Assembly: GCA_024704765.1 (NCBI GenBank) | Contig: JAKMXF010000323.1 | Location: 186,001 to 250,000, forward strand | Source: Oopsacas minuta | Taxonomy: Eukaryota; Animalia; Porifera | DNA: 64,000 bases | Reading direction: 5' to 3' | Shown: positions 26,825 to 64,000 of the stretch, in pieces | How positions within the stretch are numbered: the first letter of the stretch is position 1 | Layout: every line of letters begins with the position of its first letter | Program-made: the position numbers and the translations under genes | Notes under the pieces: model-generated | The model's database searches: none | What the model was told of the DNA's origin: nothing | What the model saw: the letters and a program-made list of their open reading frames with translations, nothing else

Positions 26825-28363
26825 TTATTCAGCTAATCTGAATCGAATATTCAAATCTTCTTCCGGTTTCAAAATTATCACTGATACTCTTTTTGGTTCT
26901 TTGGATAATGATTCAATATCAAATTTATTGATTATCCTACCAATGCTAACAAGAAGCTCATTAAATGCAAATTTCTGTCCGATGCAGTTTCTATGCCCAG
27001 CTGAAAATGTTAGAAATGAGAATGGATGTCCACCTGGTAATTCACAATCAAAACGCATTGGGTTATATTCTAATGGGTTTTCCCATATATGAGGATTTGT
27101 ATGAAGGTTTCCAATTGAAATGACTAAGCTTGTACCTTTTGGTATAAAATACCTTTCCAAATGTATATCATCATTTGCCTTCCTGTAGATAGCGTAAACA
27201 GGCGGGTATAGTCTCATTGATTCTTTGATACACATTGTTAAAAAGGTTAGCTTAGGCAAATCCTCACATAAAAGTTGTTCAGATTTTCGATCTTTGAGAA
27301 CTTCCCTTACTTCTTCCCTGCACATTATTTGATATTTTTGGTGTAAACCCAATAAATGAAGAGTCCAGGATATCGCAGAGGCTGTAGTATCATGGCCTGC
27401 AAAAAGAAAAGTTGTCATTTCTTCTACAATTCCCTCATCTGTCAGTGCCTTTCCCGTTTTATCTTTCGAGGTTAGAATAATGTCTATGAAGTCTTTGCTA
27501 CGTCTAGTCTCAAATAGTTTCGGATTTTCAAGGACAAATTTCCTTCTAGATTGTACTACTTTCATACTTTGTTCTTTCACGATCCTGTTGTTCTTTCTCC
27601 ATGCAAAACCATGTGGAGAAAGGTAGAAAATTGGTCTGCAATGATACAGTAGTGTTGTGATTTGTTTATTAGTAAGCTCTGCATTAGCCTTTATAGCATT
27701 TACATATTTATCTTCCTCATTTCCGATTTGACAATCACTTTTGTAAGAACATACACATTGTAGCATTACATCCAGTGTCAATAAAGTTATACTTTCGAAT
27801 ATAGGTATAATGACTGCACCATTTTCCATCTTTTCCTCACACTTGCGTATAAATACTTCAACTATTTCGTTGTATAGTAGTACATATGGATTGAGAATCT
27901 CATAATGGAAGCCTGGAGTTAGCATCTTCCTTCTAGTTTGCCATTTATAAAAATTGGAAATGAGCAATCCATCTCCAAGATAAGGCCTTAAAGTACCGTA
28001 GATATAGTCATCCTTTGGTAGTAATGTCGATTTCATGCATAACAGATTACTTATCTCTTCTGGAAACGAAAAAATGATAAAGTACTTGAAAGGACCTAGT
28101 CGGGTGAGAATAAGTTTACTATCTGGATCGTGTAATATATAATTATAGGCATTTTGTAGTCCTTTTTCATTTGGTGGATATCTGTCTAAAGAACCCCAGA
28201 GTGGGTGGAGATAGGGCCCTGGTATCTTGTGAATTTCATTGAGGAACTTCCAATACAAATATACAGGACGAATACACGCAATGCATAAAGCACATAGCAA
28301 TAGTACAATAACAGTAATGACGTTGTTTATGTTTAGTGCTTCACTTATAAATTCATACTCCAT
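26825..28363 (-). CDS. Cytochrome P450, CYP4 clan (CYP4F-like), intronless, 512 aa from the first ATG
   Basis: N-terminal TM anchor and PGP hinge, WxxxR (KWQTRRKMLTPGFH), I-helix EEMTTFLFAGHDTT, KESMR (ExxR), YNPMRF, heme motif FSAGHRNCIG. The ORF is uninterrupted. The ORF-track start at 28372 is GTG; the first ATG is at 28363. Confidence 0.96.
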   Translation of the reverse strand: MEYEFISEALNINNVITVIVLLLCALCIACIRPVYLYWKFLNEIHKIPGPYLHPLWGSLDRYPPNEKGLQNAYNYILHDPDSKLILTRLGPFKYFIIFSFPEEISNLLCMKSTLLPKDDYIYGTLRPYLGDGLLISNFYKWQTRRKMLTPGFHYEILNPYVLLYNEIVEVFIRKCEEKMENGAVIIPIFESITLLTLDVMLQCVCSYKSDCQIGNEEDKYVNAIKANAELTNKQITTLLYHCRPIFYLSPHGFAWRKNNRIVKEQSMKVVQSRRKFVLENPKLFETRRSKDFIDIILTSKDKTGKALTDEGIVEEMTTFLFAGHDTTASAISWTLHLLGLHQKYQIMCREEVREVLKDRKSEQLLCEDLPKLTFLTMCIKESMRLYPPVYAIYRKANDDIHLERYFIPKGTSLVISIGNLHTNPHIWENPLEYNPMRFDCELPGGHPFSFLTFSAGHRNCIGQKFAFNELLVSIGRIINKFDIESLSKEPKRVSVIILKPEEDLNIRFRLAE

Positions 28364-28648
28364 CCGAAACACTTACTCTGATTACTCTATCTGCTCCTAG
28401 TTTTAAGGCTGTATTCATTAATTGTTATGAATTATATGGAGTATATCATTCTGATTCTTAGGCATATTAATGTATACTTTTTGTCAAAAGAGCTGTTCAC
28501 AAAGGCAAAACTTTTATTAGCTGAAATATGATATTTCAATTGCATCATGCGTATACTTGTGTATGTAATCCAAATTCACCAATAATATATCTATACTGTG
28601 CCAACTCTACTACTAGAGCATAATAGCATAGTATTGATAAGTTTCTTC

Positions 28649-42714: not shown

Positions 42715-43932
42715 ATGGCTACAGCTAATCCTATATTACCACAACCTGGAGAAGATAACTACGAGTTAGAAGTAAATCGAGTGAGAAAGAAGATTAAACG
42801 TAAATTCTTCGAGTTAATCGACTGTCTAAAGGAAAGAGAGAGTAAATTATTGAGAGAGTTAGATACAATTATGGATTGTTATCGCTCTTATAAAAGTGAA
42901 TTGACAAAGCTGAATGGAAAGAAGATTGCTCTGGAAAAATCAAAAAGTTTCCATCAAAATGAGATACTCACTTCTCCTATAAAATGTGTTCATGAAGATT
43001 TGATTACTCGATTAGACACAGAACTTGAATCAATTGAGTTTCCAACACAACCTAGAATGGTTAGTTTCACTTGTGAAAACAACAAATTGATAAATGAAGT
43101 AAAGAAGTTGGGGAAGTTAGTAGGAAGTGGAAATAATTATCTAAACAAGAAACAACCTCTAGTGAGTGTTTGTGGCAGAGGAACCAGAAATGAACAACTT
43201 CACAATCCATGGGATGTTACTGTTGATAACAAAACAGGAAATATTTATATTGCAGATTATAGGAATAGCTGTATTAAAGTATTTAACAGTACTGCTATGT
43301 ATTTATTCAAATTCGGTGGAGGAGCAATTAAATACCCCAAATGTTTATCTATTTATGGAAATAGAGTTCTTATTTCTCAAGACCACTGTATCTTGAACTA
43401 TAAGCTTGATGGAAAGTTCACCTCTCAGGTTGGTAAACTGGGAAATGGAAAACTTGAATTTTTCTATCCTCAGGGTCTAGCAATTGATGATTCAAATGAA
43501 GATATTTATATCTGTGACGGTAATAACAATCGTGTACAAATACTTACCAAATACTTGTGTTACCAAACTAAATTCGGTATAAATACACTCAAAGGGCCTC
43601 AAGATGTAAAACTCTCTAAAGAATATATTTATGTGTTAGATACATCAAATCCTTGTATCCATCTCTTCAATCGTAACCTCATACTTCAGAAGAGTATAAT
43701 TTCTCGAGGAAAAGCGAATCAAGTCGTTAATCCATTGTCTTTCTTTAATGACAATTCTAACTTCATTCTGATTGCAGATCTTTCTTCTAACGCTATTTCA
43801 ATATTCAACCCTGAATACCAGTTAGTTCACAAGATTCCTGTATATCTCAATCCACAAGCAGTTACAGTAGACAATCAGAATAGAGTTATAGTAGTGTGTT
43901 ATAATCATTATGACTGTCTACAGATATTTTGA
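42715..43932 (+). CDS. Coiled-coil + NHL-repeat beta-propeller protein (TRIM-NHL-like but lacking RING and B-box), copy A, intact, 405 aa (alternative ATG at 42694)
   Basis: Uninterrupted single-exon ORF. The N-terminal ~135 aa are helical and charged, followed by NHL repeats (PWDVTVDNKTGNIYIADYRNSCIKVF; YPQGLAIDDSNEDIYICDGNNNRVQIL). Confidence 0.9.
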   Translation: MATANPILPQPGEDNYELEVNRVRKKIKRKFFELIDCLKERESKLLRELDTIMDCYRSYKSELTKLNGKKIALEKSKSFHQNEILTSPIKCVHEDLITRLDTELESIEFPTQPRMVSFTCENNKLINEVKKLGKLVGSGNNYLNKKQPLVSVCGRGTRNEQLHNPWDVTVDNKTGNIYIADYRNSCIKVFNSTAMYLFKFGGGAIKYPKCLSIYGNRVLISQDHCILNYKLDGKFTSQVGKLGNGKLEFFYPQGLAIDDSNEDIYICDGNNNRVQILTKYLCYQTKFGINTLKGPQDVKLSKEYIYVLDTSNPCIHLFNRNLILQKSIISRGKANQVVNPLSFFNDNSNFILIADLSSNAISIFNPEYQLVHKIPVYLNPQAVTVDNQNRVIVVCYNHYDCLQIF

Positions 43933-44423
43933 TATTTCATCTCTATCAATACAGGTGATAGTATCTTTGTGTGAATTTGTGTGTTTACTGATACTTTTCT
44001 TGACTTTCCCATTTATTCATTCTTGGTTTGTTATTCATGTATTTTGTGCTAATATTTGTATTATTCATTTGGTAATATTATTATTCATTTACTACTTTCA
44101 GGGTTACTTAGTTTTCAGGAATTAATTAATTATTCTATTGTGGCTATTATTATTTCTTTTATAACTAATTTACCAGTTCTGTCGTTTTTGTCTCAGAATA
44201 TGCCCTTATGTGATGTCATGAGAGATTTAGCAGAGTATGATATACATAAGAGCATTGTTTAGTTTGATTGATTACTTTTGAATTATTTGTTTTTGACTTG
44301 TATTTGGTTACTCATGTCTTATTAAATCTCTATTATTGACCTCAATTATTGTGGGTGGGTGTGTTTGTTTGTTTAACCACTTTGTATTATAATGATAGGG
44401 GAAGATGATCTCCGTATATAATA

Positions 44424-46143
44424 CAGTAGACCCTCGGAATCCGAATTGTGCCTAGAGCTTATACAATCTTTGGAAATTGTTTAAAATGTAATAACCTAGC
44501 CAATTAGCAGTGGTTCCCAACCTACGGCCCGCCTGCCTTTAATATGAACTGTTTCGAAATATTTGCATCTGTCGTATATCCTGACAAACATTCGATGGTA
44601 GAGAAAGTCAGCCTTTCATCTCAGACCGTTGCTAGAAAAGTGGACGACCTAGTAACCAATATTCAAAATACTTTGATCAAGAGACTCTGTGTCTGTCAAT
44701 TTTATAGTCTAGCCATCGATGAGTGCACAGATGTGTGTGATACAGCTCAACTCGCAATATTATCAGAGGAGCACCAAGGCCTTTGAAGTTGTTGAAGAAC
44801 TGCTCGACCCATGTCCGATGAAAGGCACAATAACAGGACAAGACATTTTGAACGAAGTAAAACATGTAATTATGAAATTCAATCTAAGTCTAGGCAAACA
44901 TTGTGGCATAAGAACTGATGGAACTCCTGTGATGATAGGAAAGCATAAAGAATTCACTAGTCTAATGCTTAAATATGTATCTCATGAAGTGATTACACAT
45001 CACTGCATCATTCGCCAACAACAATTGTGTGCAAAAACCCTGCAGATGAAACATGTGATGGAAAAAGTTGTTTCTACCTTCAATATCATTAGATCTAATG
45101 GACTCAATCCCAGAGAATTTCAGGCCTTTCTTACAGAAGAGGGATCTGACCACGATGATGTCATTTATTGTTTGCTGGCTCAGCAGAGCGGCCACTCTTG
45201 CCAGATTCGATTCCCTACTTGAAGAATTTCAATTCTTTATGAAGAGCAAAGAAAAGGATGTAAGCTTTGTGGAAGATGATCAATGGTTGAATGACTTTGC
45301 ATTCTAGTTGATATTACCAAGTATCTTGCGGAACTTAATGTGAAGCTACAAGGAAAGGAGCAACAAACTGTATGAACATGTACAAGCTATTGATTAACAA
45401 GAAAGTTGTACATTTCCAATTCTATCTACTAGGGATGGAACGATAGTGAAGTATGAAAGTATCCTGCTCTGATTGGAATTCTAAGAAATGAATCTGAATA
45501 AAAGTTAGCGGATTTCAGGGAATACTGTGATGAACTCAAACTGTTTTCAGATTCTTTTAGAATTGGCGTCAATGATGCTCATGCCATTTTCCAATTGGAA
45601 CTAATTGACATTCAAAGTGACAGTGATTTCAAGAGGGCTTTCGCTGAACATGATCTCCAAACATTTTATCGTAATATGTTACCTCAGCGTCCTACCCAAA
45701 TATCTCTCAATTTGTACTTCCTATCATTGCACTGTTAGGCAGTACATATTGCTGTGAACAGTTTTTTCAAGAATGAAAATGTTAAAACAAATAATAGATC
45801 TAAATTGACTGACGAACATCTTACCGGAATACTTCCTATCGCTACACCAACTGTACTGGCAGACAGTGATCACTTGAGCAAGCAAAAACAATGCCAAACA
45901 TCTCATTAAATTTCAAGACTAAAGTAATATATACTATAATTATACTTTTATTTAATTAATTGCTAAAAATATCAGTTTACATTTAGCCATCAGAACTTTT
46001 GGTGAATTATAGTTGGAATGTGGCCCCTTGTTCGAAAAGGTTGGAAATTCCTGTTCTATAGTATTGTTTCAATGCATTTCGTTAATCTGAACGTATTATT
46101 TTGCAATCGGAACAGTGGTGTTCGGATTAGCGAGGGTATACTG
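44424..46143. mobile_element. pogo/Tigger-type MITE (TIR family CAGT(A/G)GACCCTCG) hosting a nested hAT
   Basis: TA|CAGTAGACCCTCG...CGAGGGTATACTG|TA; the same TIR type as 52552-52889. Confidence 0.65.
44508..46053 (+). mobile_element. hAT (Buster/SPIN, GTF2IRD2-like) transposon, truncated and frameshifted
   Basis: Ends CAGTGGTTCCCAACC and GGTTGGAAATTCCTG. Transposase fragments SLAIDECTDVCDTAQLAI, RTDGTPVMIG, HHCIIRQQQLCAK and CWLSRA. Confidence 0.85.
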
Positions 46144-49100
46144 TATTGGGAATACATATCCTTCTGTTGACGATATAGGAAAGGAAACAATTACATTAAT
46201 GTAATAGAGTATGATGATTGCGATTTTCACACTTTCGGATTAATCATATGTAAAATTTTGTTGTTTTTATGAATATATAGTAAACAGTATTGATTTATTA
46301 TTCAATTTTGGAATTTACACCTTGCGAAATTCGAGGCATGAAGTAACGAGCCCGATGCAAACACAAAGTATTCGCAAGCCCCGCAGCGGGAACATACCAA
46401 ACGGTTCGTTATTGAATATGAGTGAACTTTTCTTTAATTACTTTATGGGTTTGAATATACTGGGGTCACGCTTATTAGTTTCTAGATATTCTTCTAATCC
46501 CATATAAGGAATTTCAAAAATTGATTTGAAATCTCAACTACACAATTTTATTGGTTGTTCCCATGAACTATCTGTATTCTATGTAATATACATACATATA
46601 ATTGGATAATGCTATCTTACTAAGTTCTGCAATTTCTAGATTCCAAACCCTTTCGTTTAGTTCTCAGATTCTTTCTACAGTCAAACCTGCTTAATGATCA
46701 TCTCATTTATATAACCAATACTTTTAGTATTTATCAGTCACTTTAAATAGAGTTCACCTATAGAACTCACATTTGACGAGTCCCTTGTGTGGCATCATTT
46801 TCCAATTCCACTGTATTATATATATATATCACTAGCCGCAACGCCGCCCCTGAGCGGTTTTTTCTGCTATTCCTGCGGAATGCTTTTTGGGCCTTCAGCC
46901 CTCATGATTGTCTCTGGAAGTTTGCGAACGCTACGCGTATTATGCGAAGAAGGATCTGATTGACCAACGTTGACCAATCAGATTCCTCCGAAAATGTATT
47001 GATTTATAATGGCGAGGTGTGAAAACTTCACATATCTTGTCAAAATAGTTCGATTCGAAAAATTAGTCATATTTGGAAAGGTTGAGTACTACTTAGTCAA
47101 CACACAAAAATTTCTAATCCCTGTTTATTCTGACCCATAGAATAGATTGATTAATACCTGGGTTGGCATTGAATGAATTTTTCCTGTTCCATACCCACAA
47201 GATCCCCATATGATTTCCAATAGGATTTCACACAGGATTTCTATTAGAAAACTACTATTCCTAGGACAATTGACAGTTTGATTTTGCAGCTTTTAAACCA
47301 AATTATTGTAGTTACAGCCTAATCCGAACCGCTAACAACCAAATAGAACTCTCAATTTAGGTAGTTAATATGGATACAAGCCTTAATAAGCAGTATACAA
47401 TTTGTAAAGTTATAGCACCCAAAATATATATATATCAGTCACCCAATGTTTGTCTGATTGACAAATATTATCTTTAATACAAGTACAATTGTTGGTCTGG
47501 TTGACTCGTGAGCTGCATATCTAAGAATGCTTGATTTAGCCCGGGACGATACAGCTTATCACTACCAGGCATGGGAATTGGAGGGACTGAATACCTGAAC
47601 AACAACCTGATCGTTTCGTCCTGCCAAGAGATAGACAAATAGAAATTATATTAGCGATAGCTGTTAACAGCTACAACTTACCATTGGCTGTTAACAGTTT
47701 AGCAATTTCCATCCCTGCAGTCATTTAGTTCAGGTTGAAACTGTTTTTATGTTGAAATACGTTAACAGTGAAAGACTCGAATATGTTTGGGAATATTTCC
47801 CTGCACAACGTAGGAGTCAGGAACGTGAAAACATTCCATTCGAAATTTTGTCCTAACCCACAAGTCTAGTGACCCTCGTTCGAACCCACAAGGCTAGCTG
47901 AGTCTAGTTTTACACTTATCGATCCTCCAAATGATATTGAAACACGGTTTACTTCATCATAATTTACCTGTTCTATAATGCTGGATTTATTATCAAACCA
48001 TTTCTATAGTCATAAATGGAAATTTAACAGATTCAATAATAGAAGGCGTTTGCACTATGATGTCAAAATTGTTAATGAATAGTCAATAATTATATCATTT
48101 GACAATTCAATGATCTATTAAAGTTTTCAAACTGAGTGCTTATGATTTACGAAAACTACATCAGTGTTTAACAACGTGTAAAGTTTTATCAGTATTTATA
48201 TATTAACATAATTTCGCAATACTAACTATCCACTAGAACTTCATGAAATAATGCTTAGCTATAAACTACGATATATTTGTTATATTAGAGGCGTAGGCAT
48301 TCGTTCAAAAGTTAGTTCCTCGTTAGCAATCAATACATTACAGTTATTCAACTTGACTTTATAGTTTCTGTTAAATACTTTTGATGTGTCCAAGCATCCT
48401 CATGAGTACTGTTTGTTATTGTACATTATACTTTGCACTAATTATTATTATTATTATTTGTTAGTTCGAATATACAGTAGACTGCTTAATAAGGTCACAC
48501 CGGAACCATTCTATTTTATTCCGATTAAGCTGAATAAAGGTGTTGGCCTGGTTAACTACAGTAAATTAACATTATTTGTATGGTTCTATTTCTGGCTCTT
48601 TGGCCCACTAAACCAATATTCTATTAAGCGGAGTCTACAGTTGTTTCAATTAATACTGAATACTAAGAGATGAATTATCTGTAAAGTGAAAATATAAAAT
48701 GTCCAGCCGATAGACTGGTAATGCAGCTCAGGGTTATTTGTTTTTGTTCTTTTCAGGGGGGGCCGTGTAGATACCGGAATGCAGCGGACCCCGACTGATT
48801 TTATCAAAATCGGATCTATACCCTATTACCCCTGCCAACATTTTGAAAACTAGTATCTTGCATGCTTTTGAATTTTAAATAGAAAGGTGTGAAAATATGA
48901 TTGATCACCGAAAAGGTGTGAAATATTACTTTAGATAGAATTCATACTTGAGGTGCAAAATCTCCGACCCGAAATGTGTATGTATATCAATTTTCATGTT
49001 AATCGGACAGCTAGATTCCGCACAGCCACGCGGACGGAGGTATGTATGTCGTACATCGTCCATGCCATTAGAGCACCTCCCTATAGGAGCTGCACTAAAA

Positions 49101-50694
49101 ATTATCGCACCACTACACAGATTGTTTTCACCCTATAAATACTTGTACATGCACTACTTAAAGGTCATATTTGACCCCAAATACTAGTACATATACTACA
49201 CAGGGTCATATTTAATTATTGCAGTGGCGGATCCAGGGGGATAGGGGGTATCCCCTCACCAGGATAAATGGATAATTTTATATGATATGGAATCCTAGTG
49301 GCTTTGGAAATTCATGTCAATACACATTGGCTCAAATTGTGTACAATAAATTTCTGCTCGCCTCATTCGCATCTAACCCTAAATATCATGTAATATTACC
49401 CTAATCTCAGGTATATACTATACACATTGGATTAATCTACAGAAGGAAGTTGCGTGAACTCTAACCGTGGGTCTGTACAAGTATTATGAACAAGACAACA
49501 CATTCTTTGCTTATTAAACTTTTGTCCAAGTTATGTATCTAATTCATTTGAATATTACCTTGTGCTAATGTATAAAACATATTCTTATACATAATGAATG
49601 CAACTGTAGAGTCAATCGAAATCTTTCCACCTAATGTGTATTACGTAGTTAAAAGAAATAATTTCGAGATTCGAAGTTACCTAACAGTAAAAGCCAACTA
49701 ATGTTGTGTAGAATAGGGCTTGTTGTCCAGGGGATTCGCTCCTAGACCCACTAGGGGGATTACAGCGTCCCCAGACCAACAGCTGGATTATTATCCAAAT
49801 CGGGCTTATACTATTATCAGCAATGGTGAGTTTTGTTATATCATTGAGGGTTTTCGACTGATAAATAGCATAGTTTTTGCTTTTTTTGTTGGAGACAGGA
49901 TGGTCTACATATCTGTAATACATTTACTTGGGAATAAAAGTCAATACTCGTGTCTTGAAAACCCCAAGAAATTCCAATTTGCAATTACGTAAGGAGAGGT
50001 TTAGTTTATTCAAATTTGATTCTAACCAGCACCTAGGTTGCCATTGCTACGATACAAATACCCAGCAATTGATTCACATGAATCACGTGATTAAATCGGT
50101 TGCTGTTTAGAAACCCCTCCTTACTGTGATTTGATTTAATCGAAATACGTAAAGTTCTTGAGGTTCATATAATTGAGTTCGTATTCTCTTATTCCTCTAT
50201 TCAGTTCCACAATATATTCCCATTAATTATATGGAATATTAGGAGTTAGCGCTAAAGTCCTCCTATTGTCTAAAAACACGACTCAAATCCTGCAGGTGTG
50301 CACTGATAACATCCATTTATCCTATTAACATCCTACTACATCTAATTAGAACCTAGCTTACACATATTATAAGTAGTAATTAAAATATTAATGTCGGCTA
50401 ATCTGATTCAGACATCCTCGTTCTATGCGATTGATTCCTTGAAGACACTGCAAAACAAAAACGCACAAATATAAAACAGTAATTCTCATAGAACATTAGA
50501 AACCCTGATTAGCTGAGCGTTCAGAATTATTCCGATCTAATAAGTATATATAAGTACTATGGAGAAATGTAGGAATAATAACTAAACTGTCCAAGTGTAC
50601 ATAGATTACTATTATTGTAAAAGATACTTATTTCGTAGTATTGTTGTATGACAGAACAATACCTTGTATTAGTATAACCATGGATATTTCTGCT

Positions 50695-50916
50695 ATGACA
50701 GAACAACTACCTATGACATTTCTACTACTTCCTTGATATGACTTGCCACTTTTTTAGTCACTATTACACGGTTACAAAGCAATTTATCTTGTAATTTATT
50801 GCTCATTTCCTTCTAAGTACCATCATGTTTTAGAAGTTTATTAGTTATTCATTAATAAACTTTAAAGTAATTACCAATATACACGAAACGAACTTGTAAC
50901 ATTGTATTACTATTAC

Positions 50917-50947
<31 letters not shown>

Positions 50948-51606
50948 GTTCTAATGATAACATTCGGTGATGTTTCATTTTATTGAATAATATGGGGCCT
51001 GCAATGGTTATATTTATGTTGCTTTAAGTTAATTTATCTTATTAGTTATTCATTTTGAGGCAGAATATTAGATCTCAAAATCTCAGGGGGGCCATGGTCC
51101 CCAACCCTCCCTTGTATCCTCCCCTGGTAGAATGTACAGGGTAGATTTTGAATCTCGTTAATTTGAAATTGTTTCGTACTTGATATAGTCTATACTACTG
51201 TGAAAAGGAATTGTATTTTATGTTTTACTGTGTTTCTCTAGCTACTGACAAAGCTTTTATGCTACTGAAACCACTACAGTATACTGACACACCGCTACAT
51301 AAAATATAACCATTGCAGGCCCTATATTATTCAATAAAATGAAATATCACCGATTGTTATCATTATTACAATAATAATAATAATAATAATACAATGTTAC
51401 AAGTTCGTTTCGTGTATACTGGTAATTACATTAAAGTTTATTAATGAATAACTAATAAACTTCTAAAACATGATGGGTACTTAGATTGGAAGGAAATGAG
51501 CAATAAATTACAAGATAAATTGCTTTGTAACCGTGTAATAGTGACTTAAAAGTGGCAAGTCATATCAAGGAAGTAGTAGAAATGTCATAGGTAGTTGTTC
51601 TGTCAT
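50695..51606. repeat. Inverted repeat with ~320-bp arms (50695-51022 and 51294-51606) and a ~270-bp spacer, containing (ATT)n
   Basis: The left arm ATGACAGAACAACTACC...GGTTATATTTATGTTGC matches the reverse complement of the right arm apart from scattered substitutions and microsatellite length. Confidence 0.88.
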
Positions 51607-52215
51607 ACAACAGTACTAAGTACTTATAATATTATTCTAAAAATACACATTATCACTTATAGTATTGTGTAATCTTTCTTCCATTACAGATATGTAGAGC
51701 ATCATATCTCCAAACCAAAATTTTTAAAAAAATATGCCACCCTACAATTCCTGGATCCGCCACTGATCTACTCTAATTAATTCTGTACTCTGATATACGT
51801 TTGAAGGAAATACGTATTCACTAATACAAATATTTTACACTCTGGATTTTACTGACGTTAGGAATATAATGCTCGATAGATGTGTAGGATATTAATTACA
51901 GTATAAATACATTATATGATAATTTATCAACGTGGAACATGCTTAATCATAGTTTCATAATAATACAATCTTCTTTGACAACTTGTAAATATTACAATTA
52001 TTTAACATCATTTCATAATTCAAATGAGTAACAACTTCCACTAGAATTTCATGAAATTATAATGCTGCCAGATTTAGGGGTTTTTTCCTTAATTCACGAA
52101 CCGAACAGGCATGTTTTCTTGAAGAAATTCTACTAAATACATTCAGAATAAATAGTAGACAATAGATATGAGTTGAATAACAAGGATGTTCCCTAATTGA
52201 GTCTAAAATCTAAGT

Positions 52216-54933
52216 CAGTGGTTCTCAACCTTTTCTGGCCTTCCCCCCCCCCCCACGAAGTTTAATCTCCCTTTTGGTCCGCCACCCTCTCCCCAAATAA
52301 TTTGAAATTAGTTTTTTTAATTCAAATTAACAGTAATTCATGCGAACCTTGTAATTGCTTATTAGATGCTAATATTTCAATACTTGGACTATAACTTGAT
52401 GCTGATATCCTTAAATCTTCTCTGAAGTCAAGTCGCCTGCGGTGTCTTGACCTAAGAAAATTTGCTGAAGAAAACGTTTTCTCACAAAAATTTGTTGTTG
52501 GAAATGGAAGCAAAAGCAATCTTTCAGCTGTTTTGAAAAGATTTGGTGCTACAGTGGACCCTCGCTAATCCGAACAGTAGAAAATAAAAAAATTTTGGTT
52601 TAAAAATAATAATTTTCAATCGGAATTTGAAATTTTAATATGTACATAGTACATAATAGTAGTAGTAGTAATGTTTCGTTCGGATTAGTGCGGTTTCTAT
52701 TATGTCTTACAGTACCATAATCTGATTTGTAATACATATTACTTATATTCATTCTTATAATTTTGAGTTGCATAATGTTTATAATTCCCCATATAAGTGT
52801 ATTACTTCACTAATCCGAACAAATTCGCTAATCGGAACAGATATTCCATTAATCGGAACACCTCTGTTCGGATTAGCGAGGGTCTACTGTACCACCTTCA
52901 CTAAAACCAGAATTTAGTTTTGTTAGCACAAGAATATTTAGCTTTTGCCTCCTCATTTGCCTGTAATATAACAACTCGTCTACTAGGATGTCGTCTAAGT
53001 CCATCATATCTTCCAGTGACATATCCATCCGGGTTAGCAGGTATTTAGGGATTGATGGAACGTCTGAAAAGTGATTGGAAAAATCAGTAACTAGATTCAT
53101 CAAATGTTCTTCGACAAGGGGAGTAAATTTAACTTCAAGATATGGTGAAAGAGAAAGAATTACTTCTACACGTGGAAACATGCTCCATTGGTTGCTCAGT
53201 ATACGTAAACGAAAGAATTTCAACTTATTTTGAAATGTAGTCACATTTTTTATAGCCGCTTGAAGAAAAATCCCATCTCCCTGCAACCTAAGATTACTCA
53301 GGTTATAGTAAGAGAGGATTTCAGTAAGATAAGCTAATTTCAGTTTGAAATAGATCGATGAAAGCTCTTCTGTCTTGAAGAAATGTTTCTGATCTAGAAA
53401 TTCACATAACTGATCATAAATAGAATATACTCGTTCAAAAGCTTTTCCTCTACTAACCCAGCGAACTTCTGTGTGGAATAGAAGGACGTCGTGTTCTGCT
53501 TCCGAATCTTCACATAGTTTTCTTAATATACGTTCGTTCAAAGGAGTTGATTTGACAAAGTTCACAACTTTGATGACAAGGTTAAGTGTTTCATGAAGTT
53601 CAGGCTGGAGATTTTTAGCAGCTAACGCCTGGTTATGAAGCATACAATGGATAAAACTGCACTGCGGTACTTCCCTTTCAAACATCCCCGAATCCATTAT
53701 CTCTACCCGTCATATTTCGAGCTCCATCTGTACTAACACTAACAACTTGGCTTAAACTAATCTGATGTGAGTCAAAATAGGATCTAACCATCTTGAAGAT
53801 ATCTTGTCCAGTGCAACGACATTCAAAATAATCAACGAAAAGCAATTCTTCCTTTATGCAATCGTTATCGATGAAACGCATACAGACAATAAGAGTAGAT
53901 TCTGCTCCAAATGTTGACTCATCTAATTGAATGCTGATAGGAGTGCCCTTTATAAGCCGAACCAATTTATCTTCTAAATTCTGTGAAATTTCATTAATCC
54001 TCCTTTTTACTGTATCATTAGATAACGGGATTTTGTCTAGTTTCTCAGCTGCCGCACTTCCCAGAACATGCTTGGCACAAGCCAACTGTGAAGGTTTGAT
54101 TAGAGTTTCTGCATCTGTGTGAGTTTTTTAAGCTTTGCGATTAGAAAAGATACTTCATAGGATGCCAAAGTACAACATTTCAAATCAGTAGACTGAGTGA
54201 AGAGAGAAAATTTCTTTTTCTGCGAAAAGGATTCTATTGGCTGCCCCACCTCTGTGGGATGTTTTGAAAATTGATGCGCTTTTAAATGATGAGGCCTCAT
54301 AGAATCATTCGCCAAGCATACATGGCAGGTCAAGCAATGAGGTTTTAATTCGTCTGGACTAGATATGAATCCAAACTGCAGATAAGAGGGATCATAATGT
54401 CTATTCTGCGTTTTGCATTTGGTTCGGATATAATCTTCTGATTGTATAATAAAGTCTTGCAATGATAGGATTGAAAATGAATTAATGTAGATACAGTTCT
54501 ATGTTATATTTATGTAGATTGTAAAATGAAAATTGTATCGATCAATAGGATGCCATATTATTCACATTATTGGAATCACACATCGATAAAGTATTCACAA
54601 TTGAATACATAGTATTTATTGTCATACAAAAGCAATTGATATTTGTCAGATGCATGCCATCTTCTCAAACCCTTACATTGTAAGGCTTATAAATTATTAA
54701 CAATAATTATATCTGAGTACTAACTTTATCGACGTATAATGCAAATGGGTTTTTAAAAGAGCGAGGAATTGAATACAAAGAGATAAAAAATGAGTATCGA
54801 TAGCGAGGAGCCTCCTCTGACTAGATTATTTACGCACACCCCAGGTATAGATTGTTCTCTCCGAATATGTATCCCCCTCTTCGGTATTGCCATCCCCCCA
54901 ATGGGGGAATATCCCCCTGGTTGAGAAGCACTG
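52216..54933 (-). mobile_element. hAT (Buster; ZBED5/SCAND3-like) transposon, frameshifted, with a nested MITE
   Basis: TIRs CAGTGGTTCTCAACC and GGTTGAGAAGCACTG. BED-like PHCLTCHVCLANDSMRPHHLKAH, SIQLDEST, STDGARNM, HCMLHNQALAAK, LLFHTEVRWVSRG and CEKTFS. Confidence 0.9.
52552..52889. mobile_element. 338-bp pogo/Tigger-type MITE inserted in the hAT transposase
   Basis: TA|CAGTGGACCCTCGCTAATCCGAAC...GTTCGGATTAGCGAGGGTCTACTG|TA. Confidence 0.9.
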
Positions 54934-55176
54934 ATCTTTATGAAGACCAACATTTCACAAAGTCTAGAATCGATTTGACAAACCTGCTTCATGGAAGATT
55001 TTGTTCGTTCTATTGTGTATGTATTTATCGGCTACATTGTCGGGATTTTTGAAAATTCACTGGATTTGCGTTAAAATTCCTGAGCAAACTCAGGCTATTA
55101 TTTGGGAAAAGGGCACAGAAATTTCTAGGATTTTAGATTTCAAATTATTCACTATATTTTTTAGAATCTCAGAATA

Positions 55177-56503
55177 CGAGAGTAGTCCAAAAAGTTTTTA
55201 GAATCTATATGAAAGAATAGTAGGAAATGGATTGTTTTTTATAGTTTCTCGAAGTATATACCAGATGACTGTATGCATAAATCCATCCTTCTAAACCAAC
55301 TTTCAAAACAATTTTCCCAGTCTTCTTTGGTTAGGTCTTGGAGGGCCTCATTATAAGCCAGTCTTGCCTCTTCTGCACTATTGAAATGAACCCCTTAGAT
55401 CTTCTTGTTTAGTTTAGGGAAAAGAAAGAAGTCGCATGGCGCCATATCTGGGGAATAGGCTGGATGGGGTATCAATTTTATACCATTTTCTGCAAAAAAT
55501 CCATTGTTAAAGCAGCCTCGTGTGCACTTGCATTGTCATGGTGCCATTGAAGTGAGGTGAGGTAGGCTTTAGGATGTAAAATGCTCCACTTTTCTATCAC
55601 CTGAGGCATGCAAATGTTGACATACCAACTCGCAGTTACAGTCTTTTGCTCTAGAAGGGGAATAGTAGCAACATGTCCCTTTTTAGAGATGAAACTGGCG
55701 ACCATTTGCTTGTTGCCACTTCGTGCACGTCTCAATTTTTGAGGGGGATTATCATCTGGAAAAAGCCAAACTGAGGATTGTTGCTTCGTCTCTGGGTCAT
55801 ATTGGTAAATCCAAGTCTCATCTCCCGTAATTAATGTCTTAAATAACTTTGAACGACCATGATCGAATTTTCTGATCATAAATTTGCACCAATCCATTCG
55901 AGTTGTCATTTGTTCTTCAGAAAGTTTATGTGGAATCCAACGTGCAGCCACTTTCCTCACCAAGAGATGTTCATGAAGTATGGCATGGAGGCTTCCTCTG
56001 CTGATGTCTAAATGACTAATTATTCGTCTATTATGATTCGACGCTCATTTTTGATTATTTTCTTAATTTTCTGGATATTTTCTGGGTTAACCGCATCTGC
56101 AGGACATCCTGATTGCATCTCATCACTTAGAGTCTTTCGTCCACGGTTAAATTCATCGTACCAGTTGTACACTGTAGCCAAAGATGGTGATTTTTCTCCA
56201 AATGTGTCCTGAAGTTGAATATGTGATTCTTTAGGACTGAGTTATCTCATAAAGTCATAAAAAATAATTGCGTGAAGGTGCCTCCTTTCCAAATGTAAAT
56301 CCATAAGAAATACTTATGGAAGAATTTAAAATTAGAGCCAAGTGCTGACTATATAAGTAGCTGTCAAAAAAGTAATAAAAGATAAAAAGCTTAGATATTT
56401 TACCTAGTGTAGTTATAAATAGTGTACTATAGATATAAGATGTATTGGTGTGCAAGAAATGAAGTTACACCATTCATTCTAAAAAATTTTTGGACGACCC
56501 TCG
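55177..56503 (-). mobile_element. Mariner DNA transposon, 1327 bp, pseudogenised transposase at about 55240-56304
   Basis: TIRs CGAGAGTAGTCCAAAAAGTTTTTAGAAT and ATTCTAAAAAATTTTTGGACGACCCTCG with TA TSD. Motifs WIPHKL, TGDETWI, HHDNASAH and HPAYSPDMAPCDF. Confidence 0.95.
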
Positions 56504-56650
56504 TAATCTATGTATCCTTGGCTACGTCTCTGAATGGGAGTTATTCGTTATCCCCATGGATATTATTGTTAATACGGAGTATATAAATCGACGCTGTCCT
56601 ATTAACGTTGCACTGTTTTTCATAAATTCATTGTCTCTATCGAATATCTA

Positions 56651-56821
56651 CAGTCAACTCCTGTTATATCAAACACTGATATATCCAAAATACCCGCTTA
56701 TATCAAAGTCTTAAATTGTATATAAATATGGTCTCAAAAGGTCAAAGCAATATATATTACATGATTTGTATCGCAGTATTTATCACGGCCCCTTGAGCTT
56801 CGATATACCAGGAGTTGACTG
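56651..56821. mobile_element. 171-bp TA-targeting MITE
   Basis: TA|CAGTCAACTCCTG...CAGGAGTTGACTG|TA. Confidence 0.85.
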
Positions 56822-56964
56822 TATTGAATAACTTGTATTACTTTAATATCCATAACAATCTATTTGTATTGGATATAATGCTATAGTATTATATTACATT
56901 GAAAGTATTCTTATTCTATTTATATCAATTTTAGTTTAATAAGCTTATAATTAAGATTTGTAGA

Positions 56965-57876
56965 ATGGCTACTGCTCATAGAGAAGATACAGATCATGGA
57001 GAAGATAACTTTATTCTAGAAATACATAGAATAAAGGAGAGAATTGAAATTAAAGCTGGAGTAATCGATTATACAAACAAGAAACAACCTCTAGTTAGTA
57101 TTTGTGAGAGAGGAAAAGGAAATGAAGAACTTAGCTATCCATGTGATGTTACTGTAGATAACCAAACAGGAAATATTTATATAACAGATACATGGAATAA
57201 CTGTATTAAAGTATTTGACAGTACTGCTAAATATTTATTCGAATTCGGAGACAGTAAAGGTGAAGGAGCAATGAAACACGCGATATGTTTATCTATTTAT
57301 GGAAATAGAGTTCTTATTTCTCAAGAACACTGTATCCTGAACTATATAGTAGATGGAAAGTTCATTTCCAAAGTTGGTAAATAGGGAAATGGAGAACTTG
57401 ATTTTGACTATCCTTCTGGTCTAACAATTGATGATTCAAATGAAGATATTTATATCTGTGACCGGTGTAACAATCGTGTACAAATACTTACCATAGACTT
57501 GTGTTACAAAACTAAATTCGGTATAAATACACTCAAAGAGCCTCAATATGTAAAACTATCTAAAGAATACATTTATGTGTTAGATACATCAAATCCTTGT
57601 ATCCATCTCTTCAATCGTAACCTCAAACTCCAGAAGAGTATTATTTCTCGAGGAAAAGGAAATCAAGTCATTGATCCAAGATCTTTCTTTATTGACAATT
57701 CTGACTTCATTCTTATTGCAGATAATTCTTCTGACGCTATTTCTATGTTCAACCCTGGATTCAAGTTCGTTCACAAGATTCCTGTGTTTAACAATCCATT
57801 ATCAGTTACAGTAGACAATCAGAATAGAGTTATAGTAGTGTGTTATAATAATAAGAACTGTCTACAGATATTTTGA
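56965..57876 (+). pseudogene. NHL-repeat gene copy B: most of the coiled coil is absent (in frame) and there is one premature TAG at 57382-57384
   Basis: The two track ORFs are in the same frame, separated by one TAG where copy C has CAG. A 31-aa N-terminus joins directly to IDYTNKKQP. The region downstream of the stop codon is shared with copy A. Confidence 0.88.
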
Positions 57877-59084
57877 TATCTAATCTCTATCAATACAAAT
57901 GATAGTATCTATTTGTTAATTTGTGTGTTTACTTATAATTTTATTGACTTTCCCATTTATTCATTCTTGATTTGTTATTCATGTATTTTGTGCTAATATT
58001 TGTATTATTCATTTGGTAATATTATTCTTAATTTACATATGTCAGGGTTTACTACTGTCTAGGATTGAAATCATTGTTCCATATCTGAAATTGTACAAAA
58101 TTCAATTGACTCTACAAATTTTGTCCCAAACTTTCAAAGTAACATAATTTCATTGGTTATATCGAAGTAATAATCGCGGTCATTTGGTCTTCGATATGCC
58201 CGGAGTTGACTTTACGTAACATTGTTTATGAGAGGAACTATTTTGACCGAATAATATTGTGAAAATATGAAAATCATAACGATATCCTTGTAAGCACAAG
58301 CATACAGCGTGGAGATTACATTTCTTAGTCAGTTTTACTTTCATAATTATTTTGATGTAAGTATTATTATACCACCCAAAGTGTAGTAGTTACAGCACAC
58401 CTTTAATAATCTGAACCTTTTGCCCTGTTCATGTACGGATTAGATTGAATCTAATGTATTTAAGTGTATATATTATCCTTGATAATGACGTGACCCCCTT
58501 TGTAGCCGTTTAGAGCAAGCCCAGGGGCGGATTAATGGCCTGTGAGGTCGGGCACCCAGTAGGATTGTGAGGCTGTTATTTTTAGCCTCTATTCATTCAA
58601 TAACAGTCATCATAATCAAATTTAATTCAGAAAACTTACCACTAATAAAGAATGCACAAACAATTTAATGACTACATGAATAACATAAACGGTTAAACCT
58701 TTGCTTTCTTGGATTTGCGATTACTAAACTCTTTAATAGTTTCTCTCGAATCAACTTTTCGTAGCAATTCGTGTTCTATTCGCATCAAAGATTGCATATT
58801 TCAGCACCTCTCAGACATAGTTGAGCGCAATTCGCTTTTTATCCGCTTAAGTTTGTAGAACTATCGCTCACGGGTACAATTGCTAACCATAAGGCATAAA
58901 TATATGCGCAGTGTTATGTTTAGGTTTGGGAATGCCTCGCAAAGACCATGCTGCTGGGATCAGAGCTGCAAATGGGTCACTGACCCATGGCTCAATGGGT
59001 CAGATGGATCACTTTTTTTAAGATGGGTCAGTGAGTCATGGGTCATGACCCATCAAAATTTTATTTTTATATATATAGAGCAAG

Positions 59085-59922
59085 AATGAGCAAATGACTG
59101 TCATCGTTAGATATGTTGATGAAAAAGCCAATATCTACGAGAGTTTCCTTACATTTGTGGAGGTAGCAAGTTTAAATGCTAAAAGTTTGACCACATACTT
59201 CATCTCAACACTAAATGAACACGGATTAGATCCTTCTCGTATTGTTTCTCAAGGATACGATGGAGCTGTTGTTAGGAGCGGATAATGCAACGGTGTGCAG
59301 CAGCGAATGCGACAATTATCTCCATATGCAATTTATATACATTGTTAAGCATACAAATTGAACTTAATCCTGGTTGATTGTGCAAAGAAGGTTCAATTTG
59401 CTCACGACTTTTTCATTTTACTTGAGGCAATCTATGCATTTATTTCTACCACCAAAGTACATACTATCTTTGTGAATTTGCAAAGGGAACTTCGCCCACT
59501 GAAGCGAGTACGTCAGCTACCAAGACTTTCGGATACAAGATGGACTTGCAGATATGACGCTGTTAATTCAATATGCTGCATCTACGATTCGTTGATTGCT
59601 ACCTTAGAAGAATTTGCTGATGAAGTAAATAGGAATAAAGCAGTTGAGGCAAAAAGGACTTCTACTTCAAATCAAAAGTTTTTAATATTTACTCCTACTC
59701 AGTATGTTTAATAGGATACTAACTTGCACTAAAAGTTTATCAGACCTTCTCCAACATTCCCAACTTAATTTGGCTAGTGCAGCTCATTTAGTGTCGTCAA
59801 CCATTTCAACTCATGAATATTTCGTACCGATGAAGAATGGGAAAATAATATTTACTTATGCTGAGAATGTGGCCAAATCCAATCATATCGATATTTCCGA
59901 TTTACATGCTCCCGGAAAATGA
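59085..59922 (+). pseudogene. hAT transposase fragment (ZMYM1/THAP12-like)
   Basis: EQMTVIVRYV, SQGYDGA, YIHC.AYKLNL and RLSDTRW, with stops and frameshifts. ATGGGTCA-type repeats lie at about 58972-59052. Confidence 0.85.
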
Positions 59923-59929
59923 GCTTCCA

Positions 59930-60881
59930 CAACACTTTAAAGATTATTACTCCTATAGGGACTAGAGGATATTTACCAACAAGTCTCCAATATACTCATA
60001 TATTTCCATGTACCACAACTCCACTAGGTAATGACAGTGCTGAAGAGATTCTTAGTGATTTAATACGAGAAAAGATCCAGAATTGCATCATACAAATGTT
60101 TCTAATTCTCTATTCTCGGACTTTAGAGGAAATGATAGCCATCCGGCAAAACGTGCACGAATAGAAGCTTGCAAGGGCATCCAAAAACAAGCCAAAAAAA
60201 TGATTGCACGCAATACTCGCACCCTGCGTCCTCTTCGTATCGGTGATAGCGTTGCTGTGCCTGTATCCCAGTTTGATCGAAGCAAAGGTGATCCATCAAA
60301 TATAATTGGAATTGTTTTGGAATTTGATCAGAGAGGTTATCAAATAGGAACTAGAACTGCAAAAATAAGAGGCCGACTTGCAAGAAATCAAGTTGAATTT
60401 ATCAAATTTACTGGACTGAATTCGGAACACATACCAGATGAAGAATTATCGATTCGCGAAATTGTTCGAGCATAGAGCATATGTGGTGGTCAGGGATTTC
60501 GCAGATGTCATTACAAGAGCAATTGTTTAACAAAACGTTGCTCTTGTTTAAAGGCAGTGCTAATATGCAACTGTGCTTGTCATGGGAAAGGATCATGTGA
60601 CAACATAGAGTTATTTCCTAAATATTTTCTCACTTCTCATTCATATAATTTGTTTTCTCATCATGTTTCCTCATAGAATTATAAGTACATATTCTCAAAA
60701 ATCTTTAGATAAACAGCATTGCACATTTCATGAAGTGTGCAATAATTTGAAAGACCATTACATGAAATGAGTAACCAAATATCTATTCAATGAAATGGAC
60801 AACACAATTGCCCATTTCACCCATTGAGCAATTTGTTTGCCCAATGCATGAAATGGGCAATTTCACGATTTGCGTGTAACA
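59930..60881 (+). mobile_element. 3' fragment of a Ginger2/Tdd-like element (KRBA2-like integrase C-terminus with Cys-rich tail)
   Basis: IGDSVAVPVSQFDRSKGDPSNIIGIVL...ARNQV...GGQGFRRC...CLTKRCSCLK...CNCACH...CDN, ending in ...TTGCGTGTAACA, a TGT/ACA Ginger-type terminus. The 5' part and catalytic core are absent. Confidence 0.72.
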
Positions 60882-60904
60882 TATATACGAATTAATTAAT
60901 AGTA

Positions 60905-61597
60905 CAGTTGAAGCCTCTTAATTGGAACTCGGATAATCGAGATATCCGCTTAACGGGACTATGGTTTGAGGACAGATTTTTACTTAGAAATATCGTCGGA
61001 TAATTGTGACATTGAATCGGTTAATCAGGATTTCTAATCCCAATTACCCGATAGTATATACATTCATAATCATTGTAATATGATTTGTTTTTAAAACTAT
61101 GAATTTTAATATTCTATTCTACAAACATAACAATACAACACCGATTCTATTATTATTTACAAAACTAAGATTATTCACTTTGCTCACTGACTCAGGTCCC
61201 ATTGCCTATTGCACCATGTACGGTATATATTACCTCAATAATACAGACTGTTGGTTATCCAAACGTTTTGCTTGATCCTATGTAGTACGGATAATTGAGG
61301 TTGAAGTAATAAGTACGTGCATTATTGTTTAAACATAAATTACTAACTTTCTACCTAAATTGTTATTCATGAGTAAACTATTTTTATTAACTCTTGAAGC
61401 AGGACTCTACCCTTACTACAACGAATTATCTCTGCTATATCTTATATAAATCAGGATTTAGTAGTAGCGTAATAAGATATTTCTGGTTAAGAACTGAGAA
61501 TATGAAAAACTAGTTTTTGAATCCTTAAATACAATACAATTGGTTAATCGGGACAATACATTGACTCCCGAGCTGTCCGATTAAGCGACTGCCACTG
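60905..61597. mobile_element. 693-bp non-autonomous pogo/Tigger-type element, same family as 12422-14549
   Basis: TA|CAGTTGAAGCCTCTTAATTGG...CGATTAAGCGACTGCCACTG|TA. Confidence 0.82.
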
Positions 61598-62217
61598 TAG
61601 TATAGAAGGAAAGATCAGTTCAATTTATGTATTTAATTATTGCGGTTCGTTAATGCTTCCATTAAACTGGTTTTGACTCTACCCAATATTGTTATAAGAC
61701 GAATTATATTAACTGAATGTTATTATGAATAATGTTGATATCATAATAATATCCTTTTAGTAAGCAAATCATGTAAGTAGTGAGTATGAAATTTCATAAT
61801 CAGTTTTACTTTTACTTCCATAATTATAGTATTTATAGCATAACCTCGCTATTCAGAACATTTTTGCCCCTATTCGAATTATCAAAGTTAGGATTAGTGA
61901 GTCTCTACTGTACTTGTATATGAATTTTCCTCACAAATACGTACATCAAATTTTACAATTCTTAACTGATTATGGTCGAACTGTTACGCTCGTAATGAAA
62001 AGGTATACTCAAATAATGTCACACATTATTAAGCAATTCTCACAAGAAAACGATATTTTAGCACCTTTTTCTGGCCTAAAATCACACATTTCCCGGTCGT
62101 ATTTGGTTAATATATTTTGGTTAGTTGCATTTCTCTCTGATTTGTCTAGTTTGTGTAATTTGATTCCTTGTATGATCTTATATATATTTGAATAATATGA
62201 ATTGTATAGCAATAATA

Positions 62218-63443
62218 ATGGCTACAGCTAATCCTATATTACCACAACCTGGAGAAGATAACTACGAGTTAGAAGTAAATCGAGTGAGAGAGAAGATTAA
62301 AAGTACATTCTTAGAGTTAATCGACTGTCTAAAGGAAAGAGAGAGTAAATTGTTGAGAGAGTTAGATACAATTATGGATTGTTATCGCTCTTATAAAAGT
62401 GAATTGACAAAGCTGAATGGAAAAAAGATTGCTCTAGAAAAATCCCAAAGTTTCCTACAACATGAGATACTCACTTCTCCTATAAAATGTGTTCATGAAG
62501 ATTTGATTACTCGATTAGACACAGAACATGAATCAATTGAGTTTCCTAAACAACCTAGAATGGTTAGTTTCACTTGTGAAAACAACAAATTGTTAGATGA
62601 AGTAAAGAAGTTGGGGAGGTTAGTGAGAAGCGGAATTGATTATACAAACAAGAAACAACCTCTAATGAGTGTTTGTGACAGAGGAACCGGAAATGAACAA
62701 CTTAGCTTCCCACGGGATGTTACTGTGGATAACGAAACAGGAAATATTTGTGTAGCAGATACATGGAATGACTGTATTAAAGTATTTGATAGTACCGCTA
62801 AGTATTTATTCAAATTCGGAGATCGTAGAGGTGAAGGAGTGATGAATTCTCCGAAATTTTTATCTATTTATGGAAATAGAGTTCTTATCTCTCAAGACCA
62901 CTGTATCCTGAAATATACACTGGATGGAAAGTTCATTTCCAAAGTTGGTAAACAGGGAAATGGAGAACTTGAATTTGGCTATCTTTATGGTCTAACAATT
63001 GATGATTCAAATGAAGATATTTATATCTGTGACTGTTATAACAATCGTGTACAAATACTTACCAAAGACTTGTGCTACAAAACTAAATTCGGTACAAATA
63101 CACTCAAACGTCCTCTAAATGTGAAACTCTCTAAAGAATATATTTATGTGTTAGATACATCAAATCCTTGTATCCATCTCTTCAATCGTAACTTCATACT
63201 CCAGAAGAGCATTATTTCTCGAGGAAAAAGAAGGCAAGTGATATCTCCCTTGTTTTCTTTCTAGACATCTCTGACAATATTCTAATCTCAGATTATGGTT
63301 CTAATTCTATTTCTATTTTCAATTCTAAATATGAATGTATCCACACAATCTCTATTCCTGAACCAACAGGAATTACAGTAGATGATAAAGATAGAATTCT
63401 TGTTATGAGTCAAGCTGATGAGAATTGTCTACAGATATTCTAA
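62218..63443 (+). CDS. Coiled-coil + NHL-repeat gene copy C, full length except for one 1-nt frameshift in a T run at about 63253-63256 (pseudogene or sequence error)
   Basis: Near-identical to copy A over the coiled coil. After the frameshift the alternative frame reads FFLDISDNILISDYGSNSISIFNSKYECIHTISIPEPTGITVDDKDRILVMSQADENCLQIF* to 63443. Confidence 0.85.
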
Positions 63444-64000
63444 TACTCTTAGATATTTACTACTTTATGTTACCCATTTTCTACATTTTATTTGTTTTTT
63501 CCACTAAATATTTTGTCGTGTTTCCAGTAATGAATCTTTTCCTTACTTTTACTATTCCTTTCGTCTCTAATCCATAATACTTTCCATCCCTTAATGCCAC
63601 GGTCTTAACCTCTACACTAATGAACTCCTTCATATAGACAGCAATACAATATTTGGAATACTGTGGATCCTGCTCTCGTCCGTGGACAACCAAGGTTGGG
63701 AACCGCTGACTTGTTACTTAGTATACTTTGATTACACATCTTTCAAAAATGGCAAATCCATCAATATACTTTGGTCATAATCTGGCAACATCCTCTCACC
63801 TTTTGACTCTCTCATTTAAGTTCTCTAGAATATGCTGCGAATATTTTCCAAGTTCCCAATAGAAATCATACTACAGCACTATAGAATACATATAGGTGAT
63901 CTATGCAGCCAAAATCGATGGGTAGGGTTTTGCTGTGACCGCTGACCAAATAGGAAGACCTCTAGCAGTGAACGGAACTCTCCGAATGTAGTTGCCTCAT

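Follow-up and report, generated by a model that had tools for sequence, protein, structure and literature searches.

Evidence of diversifying selection on one propeller face in a large NHL family of the glass sponge Oopsacas minuta

A stretch of 64,000 nucleotides (nt) from the genome of Oopsacas minuta (assembly GCA_024704765.1, 61.5 Mb; contig JAKMXF010000323.1, here C323; G000:C323:186001-250000), hereafter the window, carries three copies, designated A, B and C, of a gene encoding an NHL beta-propeller protein. We propose that these copies belong to a large, rapidly turning-over O. minuta NHL family in which one face of the propeller is under diversifying selection, a reading to which we assign a probability of about 0.78. 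In the best-supported interpretation of the sequence comparisons, the family would represent an inherited repertoire of binding surfaces built on a single scaffold. A constant scaffold combined with a positively selected binding face is the usual genomic sign of recognition repertoires, as in MHC, TRIM5, the NLRs of plants and fungi, and VLRs. To our knowledge, no recognition repertoire has been known on an NHL propeller. Targeted full-text literature searches returned no description of such an NHL family, in line with the initial annotation of the window, which had suggested a candidate diversifying receptor family and knew of no precedent for it, and NHL is not mentioned in either of the two published glass-sponge genome papers.

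The product of copy A consists of a helical stalk (residues 16-106), a linker and a six-bladed NHL propeller (residues 150-405), and the NCBI models of its paralogues and the ENA gene calls of related proteins, 408-412 residues long, start at the same place. The Pfam NHL model (PF01436) matches copy A with 79.1 bits against a cut-off of 20 (E = 1.3e-22), and NHL and the related DUF5128 propeller are the only Pfam matches in A, B and C. Neither a RING finger nor a B-box zinc finger was detected by Pfam in any of the three copies, which had already been described as RING-less from the reading frames. An AlphaFold model of copy A, built on 24 family members, has a mean predicted local distance difference test score of 85.7, with values of about 90-98 across most of the NHL domain. 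The model contains 24 strands forming six four-stranded blades, with an N-terminal strand at residues 150-153 closing blade 6, and long helices are predicted at residues 16-84 and 90-106. The best PDB matches of the propeller are TRIM2, Thin, TRIM3, TRIM71 and Brat, and Foldseek comparison with the NHL domains of TRIM71, Thin and TRIM2 yields template modelling scores of 0.83-0.86 at a root-mean-square deviation of 2.1 Å. The N-terminal stalk has no meaningful Pfam or PDB match, neither to TRIM coiled coils nor to any solved chain; it probably serves oligomerisation. Since neither a signal peptide nor a hydrophobic, membrane-type segment was found in copy A (the maximum Kyte-Doolittle mean over 19 residues is 0.84), the family proteins are predicted to be probably intracellular.

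The structural classes of residues were fixed from the DSSP strands of the AlphaFold model prior to any look at variation. In a four-stranded antiparallel blade, topology assigns the loops to the two faces of the propeller in alternation, d-to-a and b-to-c to one, a-to-b and c-to-d to the other. A register of 30 sites was defined as the two residues before and the one residue after each blade-start Pro (positions 165, 208, 252, 295, 340 and 380 in copy A), together with the first two residues past each b strand; the topology of a propeller puts all of them on one face, the top. The assignment rests on topology because phmmer alignments of copy A, which would link it to the RNA-contact residues of Brat or LIN-41, slip between repeats. 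Register sites are enriched in Trp (17.6-fold), Tyr (3.7-fold), His (2.5-fold), Arg (2.2-fold) and Ser (2.0-fold) and depleted in Val, Ile and Pro. A make-up of this kind is typical of binding hot spots. In the characterised proteins Brat, LIN-41 and Mei-P26, RNA is bound on the top surface of the NHL domain (PMC9070667, PMC5908797), and the placement of the variable loops on this surface, as given in the initial annotation, agrees with this published location of RNA binding in Brat and LIN-41.

Selection was assessed on a family-wide sample of 71 stop-free NHL domains, not all copies, from which 33 disjoint close pairs with a synonymous divergence (dS) of 0.04-0.33 were formed. In Nei-Gojobori counts, the register displays a proportion of non-synonymous differences (pN) of 0.309 and of synonymous differences (pS) of 0.181, giving a ratio of non-synonymous to synonymous change (omega, dN/dS) of 1.92 (bootstrap confidence interval 1.57-2.42), or 2.75 (2.34-3.26) when measured against domain-wide dS. 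Other top-loop sites lie at about 0.9, bottom loops at 0.47 and strands at 0.44-0.47, and register pN exceeds domain pS in 30 of the 33 pairs. Two of the pairs come from copy A's own clade, L002-L003 with a face pN of 0.42 at a dS of 0.11, and A-L004 with 0.43 at 0.22. A maximum-likelihood codon model with pair-specific times returned an omega of 3.03 in the register and 0.48 elsewhere, with a likelihood-ratio statistic of 293.8 against omega = 1; when the register codons were given a free time scale, its estimate was rho = 1.14 and omega was 2.76 (likelihood-ratio statistic 48.7, p = 3e-12). The excess of non-synonymous change that had been suspected from the three window copies is therefore retained, at omega 2.8-3.0, in pairs of stop-free domains.

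A per-codon Poisson test with Bonferroni correction placed 13 codons above neutrality (164, 166, 182, 183, 207, 250, 253, 270, 310, 341, 357, 396 and 399 in copy A). All 13 lie on the top face, 12 of them at register sites and the remaining one in the b-c loop of blade 6, and no codon of the bottom face or of the strand interiors reached individual significance in this test. The variable sites are thus not scattered but, as had been proposed, clustered on what topology gives as a single face, in two kinds of loop (d-to-a and b-to-c) and in the residue that opens strand a. Sliding the register by 1 to 10 residues in either direction lowered omega to 0.41-1.25, against 2.75 for the true register, and among 5000 random sets of 30 sites omega never exceeded 1.34.

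The same pattern is visible among the window copies themselves. In the comparison of A, B and C, the encoded amino acid differs at 18 of the 23 comparable face codons but at only 17 of the 88 strand codons. Replacement of entire codons at the variable positions, as claimed, is confirmed: half of the differing face codons carry two or three base changes, compared with 10 of 63 in the strands. Translations and alignment also bear out the positions of the three copies and every motif quoted for copy A (HNPW at 43201-43212, YRNS at 43258-43269, FYPQ at 43462-43473, GN at 43519-43524 and GPQD at 43594-43605), with the variants of B and C as listed, and the quoted 48-mer shared by the copies occurs exactly three times, at 43630, 57574 and 63145. 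The further statement that the scaffolds are nearly identical even at third codon positions was correct for this 48-mer but overstated for the remainder: scaffold pS amounts to 0.20-0.21 among A, B and C, so the scaffold is not identical at silent sites, and by a rough estimate, not computed, one identical stretch of 48 nt would be unremarkable at a pS of about 0.20. Among the intact clade genes, scaffold pS is 0.12-0.15. In the four intact members of the clade (A together with three genes of contig C309, namely L002, L003 and L004), the top-face loops have an omega of 1.42 (b-c loops 2.62, d-a loops 1.11), the bottom loops 0.45, the strands 0.31 and the stalk 0.64, and whole-gene omega ranges from 0.45 to 0.77. 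The coordinates of the copies and of the variable-face sites are collected in Table 1.

Table 1. Window coordinates of the three NHL copies and of the variable-face segments of copy A (aa, amino-acid positions; ORF, open reading frame; significance refers to the per-codon test)
Feature	Position	Strand	Remarks
Copy A, intact single-exon gene, 405 aa	42715..43932	+	ORF, Pfam, AlphaFold model, Foldseek
Copy A NHL propeller, aa 150-405	43162..43929	+	DSSP strands of the model; phmmer to TRIM2 NHL, 2e-25
Blade 1 entry, HNPW, aa 163-166	43201..43212	+	Sites 164 and 166 individually above neutrality
Blade 1 b-c loop, aa 182-183	43258..43263	+	Both significant
Blade 2 entry, KYPK, aa 206-209	43330..43341	+	Site 207 significant
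Blade 2 b-c loop, aa 223-224	43381..43386	+	Register, only moderately variable
Blade 3 entry, FYPQ, aa 250-253	43462..43473	+	Sites 250 and 253 significant
Blade 3 b-c loop, aa 269-270	43519..43524	+	Site 270 significant
Blade 4 entry, aa 293-296	43591..43602	+	
Blade 4 b-c loop, aa 310-311	43642..43647	+	310 significant; 311 is a conserved Ser
Blade 5 entry, VNPL, aa 338-341	43726..43737	+	Site 341 significant
Blade 5 b-c loop, aa 356-357	43780..43785	+	Site 357 significant
Blade 6 entry, aa 378-381	43846..43857	+	
Blade 6 b-c loop, aa 396-399	43900..43911	+	Sites 396 and 399 significant
Copy B, chimeric pseudogene	56936..57876	+	Translation, alignment
Copy C, chimeric pseudogene	62218..63443	+	Translation, alignment, blastn

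A search of the genome with protein A gave 912 first-look candidates, with 103 scored and matched at E <= 0.001, and a search with the NHL repeat model gave 1549 candidate repeats. From these rough counts, which are of a lower-bound kind, the family would comprise several hundred genes. Its members decay as well as multiply: stops or frameshifts are present in 5 of the 9 members of copy A's clade. In copy B (56965-57876, or 56936-57876 including the whole chimeric 5' part) the coiled coil is deleted, the first ~130 residues are absent and an in-frame TAG stands at 57382-57384. Its first 117 nt (56936-57052) match the start of L011, a gene of another subfamily, at 99% identity, and to this L011-like end is joined, from 57063 on, an NHL part of the A clade; L009 on contig C309 has the same structure at 94-99% identity. 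Copy C follows the A clade to ~63230 and then continues into an L011-like 3' end. As far as the end of the gene, 30-nt windows there match L011 at 87-100%, whereas their identity to the A clade is 48-77%. The reading frame breaks near 63260 (stop at 63262-63264), and the downstream flank is still L011-homologous up to 64000 (78.9% over one blastn high-scoring segment pair, 62250-64000). The NHL gene cluster reaches past the window, since an intact family member 50% identical to A (L014, G000:C323:274409-275647, + strand) and stalk-only family fragments (C323:261356-261764, - strand) lie 11-25 kb downstream. Elsewhere in the genome, the NHL domains of L053 and L054 (G000:C339:184474-185277 and 208603-209406) are identical at every codon (dS = 0) and lie on opposite strands 24 kb apart, which points to an inverted duplication of very recent date or else to a duplicate created in assembly. 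The NCBI names of the O. minuta family proteins are inconsistent and partly misleading, and include PEP-CTERM, PKD domain-containing, TRIM2 and TRIM71.

The protein search also identified a second expansion, comprising at least 114 full-length relatives of ~409 residues that are 57-61% identical to A. The source of four of them (L077-L080) was looked up; they originate from the ENA assemblies ERZ25766962 or ERZ25072730, where they form tandem arrays. The ENA relatives constitute a single clade with a support of 0.999, and their variability follows the same register: the 30 register sites average 2.14 bits of entropy versus 0.42 in the strands, 22 of the 30 most variable sites fall in the register, and six DNA pairs give an omega of 1.70 in the register and 0.47 elsewhere. 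Open reading frames of MULE, THAP and hAT type and an endonuclease are found among the ENA copies.

Several alternatives to a selected recognition repertoire were weighed. The strongest, which we nevertheless regard as unlikely, holds that the proteins are endogenous post-transcriptional regulators or adaptors, each tuned to an RNA or protein of the sponge itself, with no arms race involved. It is favoured by the RNA-binding TRIM-NHL propellers being the nearest solved relatives, and by the description of the NHL top surface as evolutionarily plastic in RNA recognition (PMC5908797). An omega near 3 in close, recent duplicates, the turnover through pseudogenes and the separate expansions in two assemblies appear to fit changing targets better than fixed ones of the sponge itself.

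The family copies recombine. For the family as a whole, the pairwise homoplasy index test, restricted to the third positions of non-register codons, yields p = 0.004; in copy A's clade alone p is 0.08, with only 18 informative sites. In addition to the chimeras described above, L012 is 98-99% identical to L004 across ~400 nt. Under such exchange, gene conversion could keep the scaffold young and its dS low while old loop cassettes are retained and shuffled, and omega above 1 would be only apparent; the wide variation in face divergence among pairs of similar dS and the single clade formed by the ENA genes are also compatible with this possibility. We consider it improbable. Face codons exceed the other codons in synonymous rate by a factor of only 1.14, so the excess does not arise from older loops on a homogenised scaffold, and omega stays above 1 when face codons are measured against their own synonymous changes (the 2.76 of the codon model and the 1.92 of the Nei-Gojobori counts given above). 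Scaffold dS, at 0.05-0.33, is not near zero. Even if loop shuffling took place on this scale, selection would be needed to keep the face diverse.

A still smaller probability falls to the genes being mobile-element cargo, multiplying because a transposon carries them. The single-exon genes are spread across many contigs, transposase fragments lie between copies, and the transposon-type reading frames mentioned above adjoin the ENA copies. However, the homology between copies stops ~100 nt upstream and 100-170 nt downstream of the reading frame and the shared unit contains no transposase (terminal repeats were not searched for), and mobility would not account for an omega above 1 that is specific to one face. 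Least probable of all is relaxed constraint, under which the loops of decaying copies would drift neutrally: the broken clade members and the high omega of the whole NHL domain (0.5-1.0) are in its favour, but we reject it because stop-free domains reach omega 2.8-3.0 on the face, with omega = 1 excluded even when the face codons supply their own synonymous reference, and because the bottom loops, equally exposed, remain at 0.47.

The reading of diversifying selection on one face has its own weak points. Where a family recombines, its paralogue pairs are not fully independent of one another; the single face is deduced from strand topology and DSSP, and its equation with the ligand face from published NHL structures; and two of the three window copies, B and C, are dead.

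If selection of this kind is accepted, the following course of evolution can be envisaged. The family would be germline-encoded, each gene a single exon specifying the stalk and the six-bladed NHL propeller with neither RING nor B-box. New copies would arise by local and dispersed duplication, swap segments by non-allelic recombination to produce chimeras and in many cases decay, in a birth-and-death process. Positive diversifying selection would act on some 30 residues, five per blade, at the entry of strand a and in the b-c loop, a position that puts them on a single face around the central channel, while purifying selection would maintain the rest of the propeller. The expected result is a set of propellers that share a scaffold and differ in their binding surfaces, in which Trp, Tyr, His, Arg and Ser are abundant. 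Of this picture, the comparisons above demonstrate the architecture, where the variable sites lie, their omega above 1, the recombination, the recurrence in a second expansion and the residue composition. We infer that the variable face binds diverse ligands, either RNA or protein, and that the selective agent is a changing set of non-self or parasitic targets.

Among known systems, the TRIM-NHL proteins (TRIM2, TRIM3, TRIM32/Thin, TRIM71/LIN-41, Brat and Mei-P26) share with the sponge family a homologous six-bladed propeller preceded by a helical region. In contrast, the sponge proteins possess no RING, B-box or filamin domain, their stalk resembles no solved chain, they form a family of hundreds of copies where TRIM-NHL proteins are few conserved orthologues, and their top face is positively selected rather than conserved. 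Extracellular repertoires, namely the VLRs of lampreys, the FREPs of snails and the 185/333 proteins of sea urchins, likewise combine a constant scaffold, concentrated variability and many gene copies, but these are secreted or membrane-bound and several are somatically diversified, whereas the sponge proteins have no signal peptide and there is no evidence of somatic change in them. Intracellular families with positively selected target-binding loops include the B30.2/SPRY domains of TRIM5alpha and the finTRIMs and the F-box and MATH-BTB expansions of nematodes and plants, all of which are read as recognising viral or other foreign proteins. They join a SPRY, FBA or MATH binding domain to an E3-ligase module or adaptor domain, whereas the binding domain of the sponge proteins is NHL and no effector domain is recognisable. 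TRIM5-type restriction factors act in the cytoplasm. By analogy, these factors and the WD40 propellers of the Podospora NWD/HET proteins may be the closest functional analogues of the sponge family.

The NWD/HNWD proteins of Podospora anserina (het-d, het-e and het-r) are NACHT-WD40 proteins of non-self recognition (PMC1805685, PMC2873952). As in the sponge family, a beta-propeller carries, per repeat, a few interaction-face positions under positive diversifying selection (PMC1805685, PMC2873952); in the sponge these number five per blade, at omega 2.8-3.0. Both families keep the remainder uniform through exchange among members, both include pseudogenes, and in both the proteins work in the cytoplasm of a syncytial organism, a location that for the sponge proteins is predicted. 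The fungal propellers are WD40 and not NHL, and neither a NACHT nor a HET domain was found by Pfam in the sponge proteins. Furthermore, the fungal repeats are near-identical within a gene, whereas the DNA of copy A's blades shows no such likeness, since Tandem Repeats Finder detects no blade-period repeat in it, and the diversity of the sponge family lies between many genes and not within repeat arrays.

Other elements of the window are recorded here for completeness. A mariner-type transposase fragment is located at 1141-1767 on the - strand (Transposase_1 with DDE_3, 2.5e-20), and a second, weak one at 55478-55963, also on the - strand, falls below the cut-off (1.4e-4). The open reading frames between the NHL copies at 44719-45222, 52873-54462, 59358-59711 and 60083-60475 have no Pfam match and look transposon-derived by eye. 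Between A and B, inverted repeats of ~330 nt (50694-51022 and 51294-51607) are 88.7% identical and ~270 nt apart. Upstream of copy A, a 539-residue reading frame at 36404-38023 (+) combines an integrase core (rve, 2.3e-8) with an OTU cysteine-protease domain (9e-11), and an uninterrupted 515-residue frame at 26825-28372 (-) encodes a cytochrome P450 (Pfam p450, 1.6e-83).

Glass-sponge tissue is one large syncytium, and recognition and immunity in it are little known. As the fungal system works in a syncytium, a non-self role in the syncytial sponge is an attractive, if unproven, hypothesis. We tentatively suggest, by analogy and as a possibility rather than an expectation, that glass sponges may have an as yet undescribed NHL-based variable recognition system, in which hundreds of stalk-and-propeller proteins in the syncytial cytoplasm would sense non-self, such as viruses, the RNA or protein of transposons or symbionts, or foreign cytoplasm after tissue fusion; such a system would be an animal equivalent to the fungal het/NWD receptors and to TRIM5-type factors. 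Several hundred such genes in a 61-Mb genome would constitute a major investment. Should their targets be RNAs, the family would offer a natural collection of NHL-RNA specificities; should they be non-self, it would represent a new receptor scaffold for animal innate immunity or allorecognition and a striking parallel to fungal heterokaryon incompatibility.

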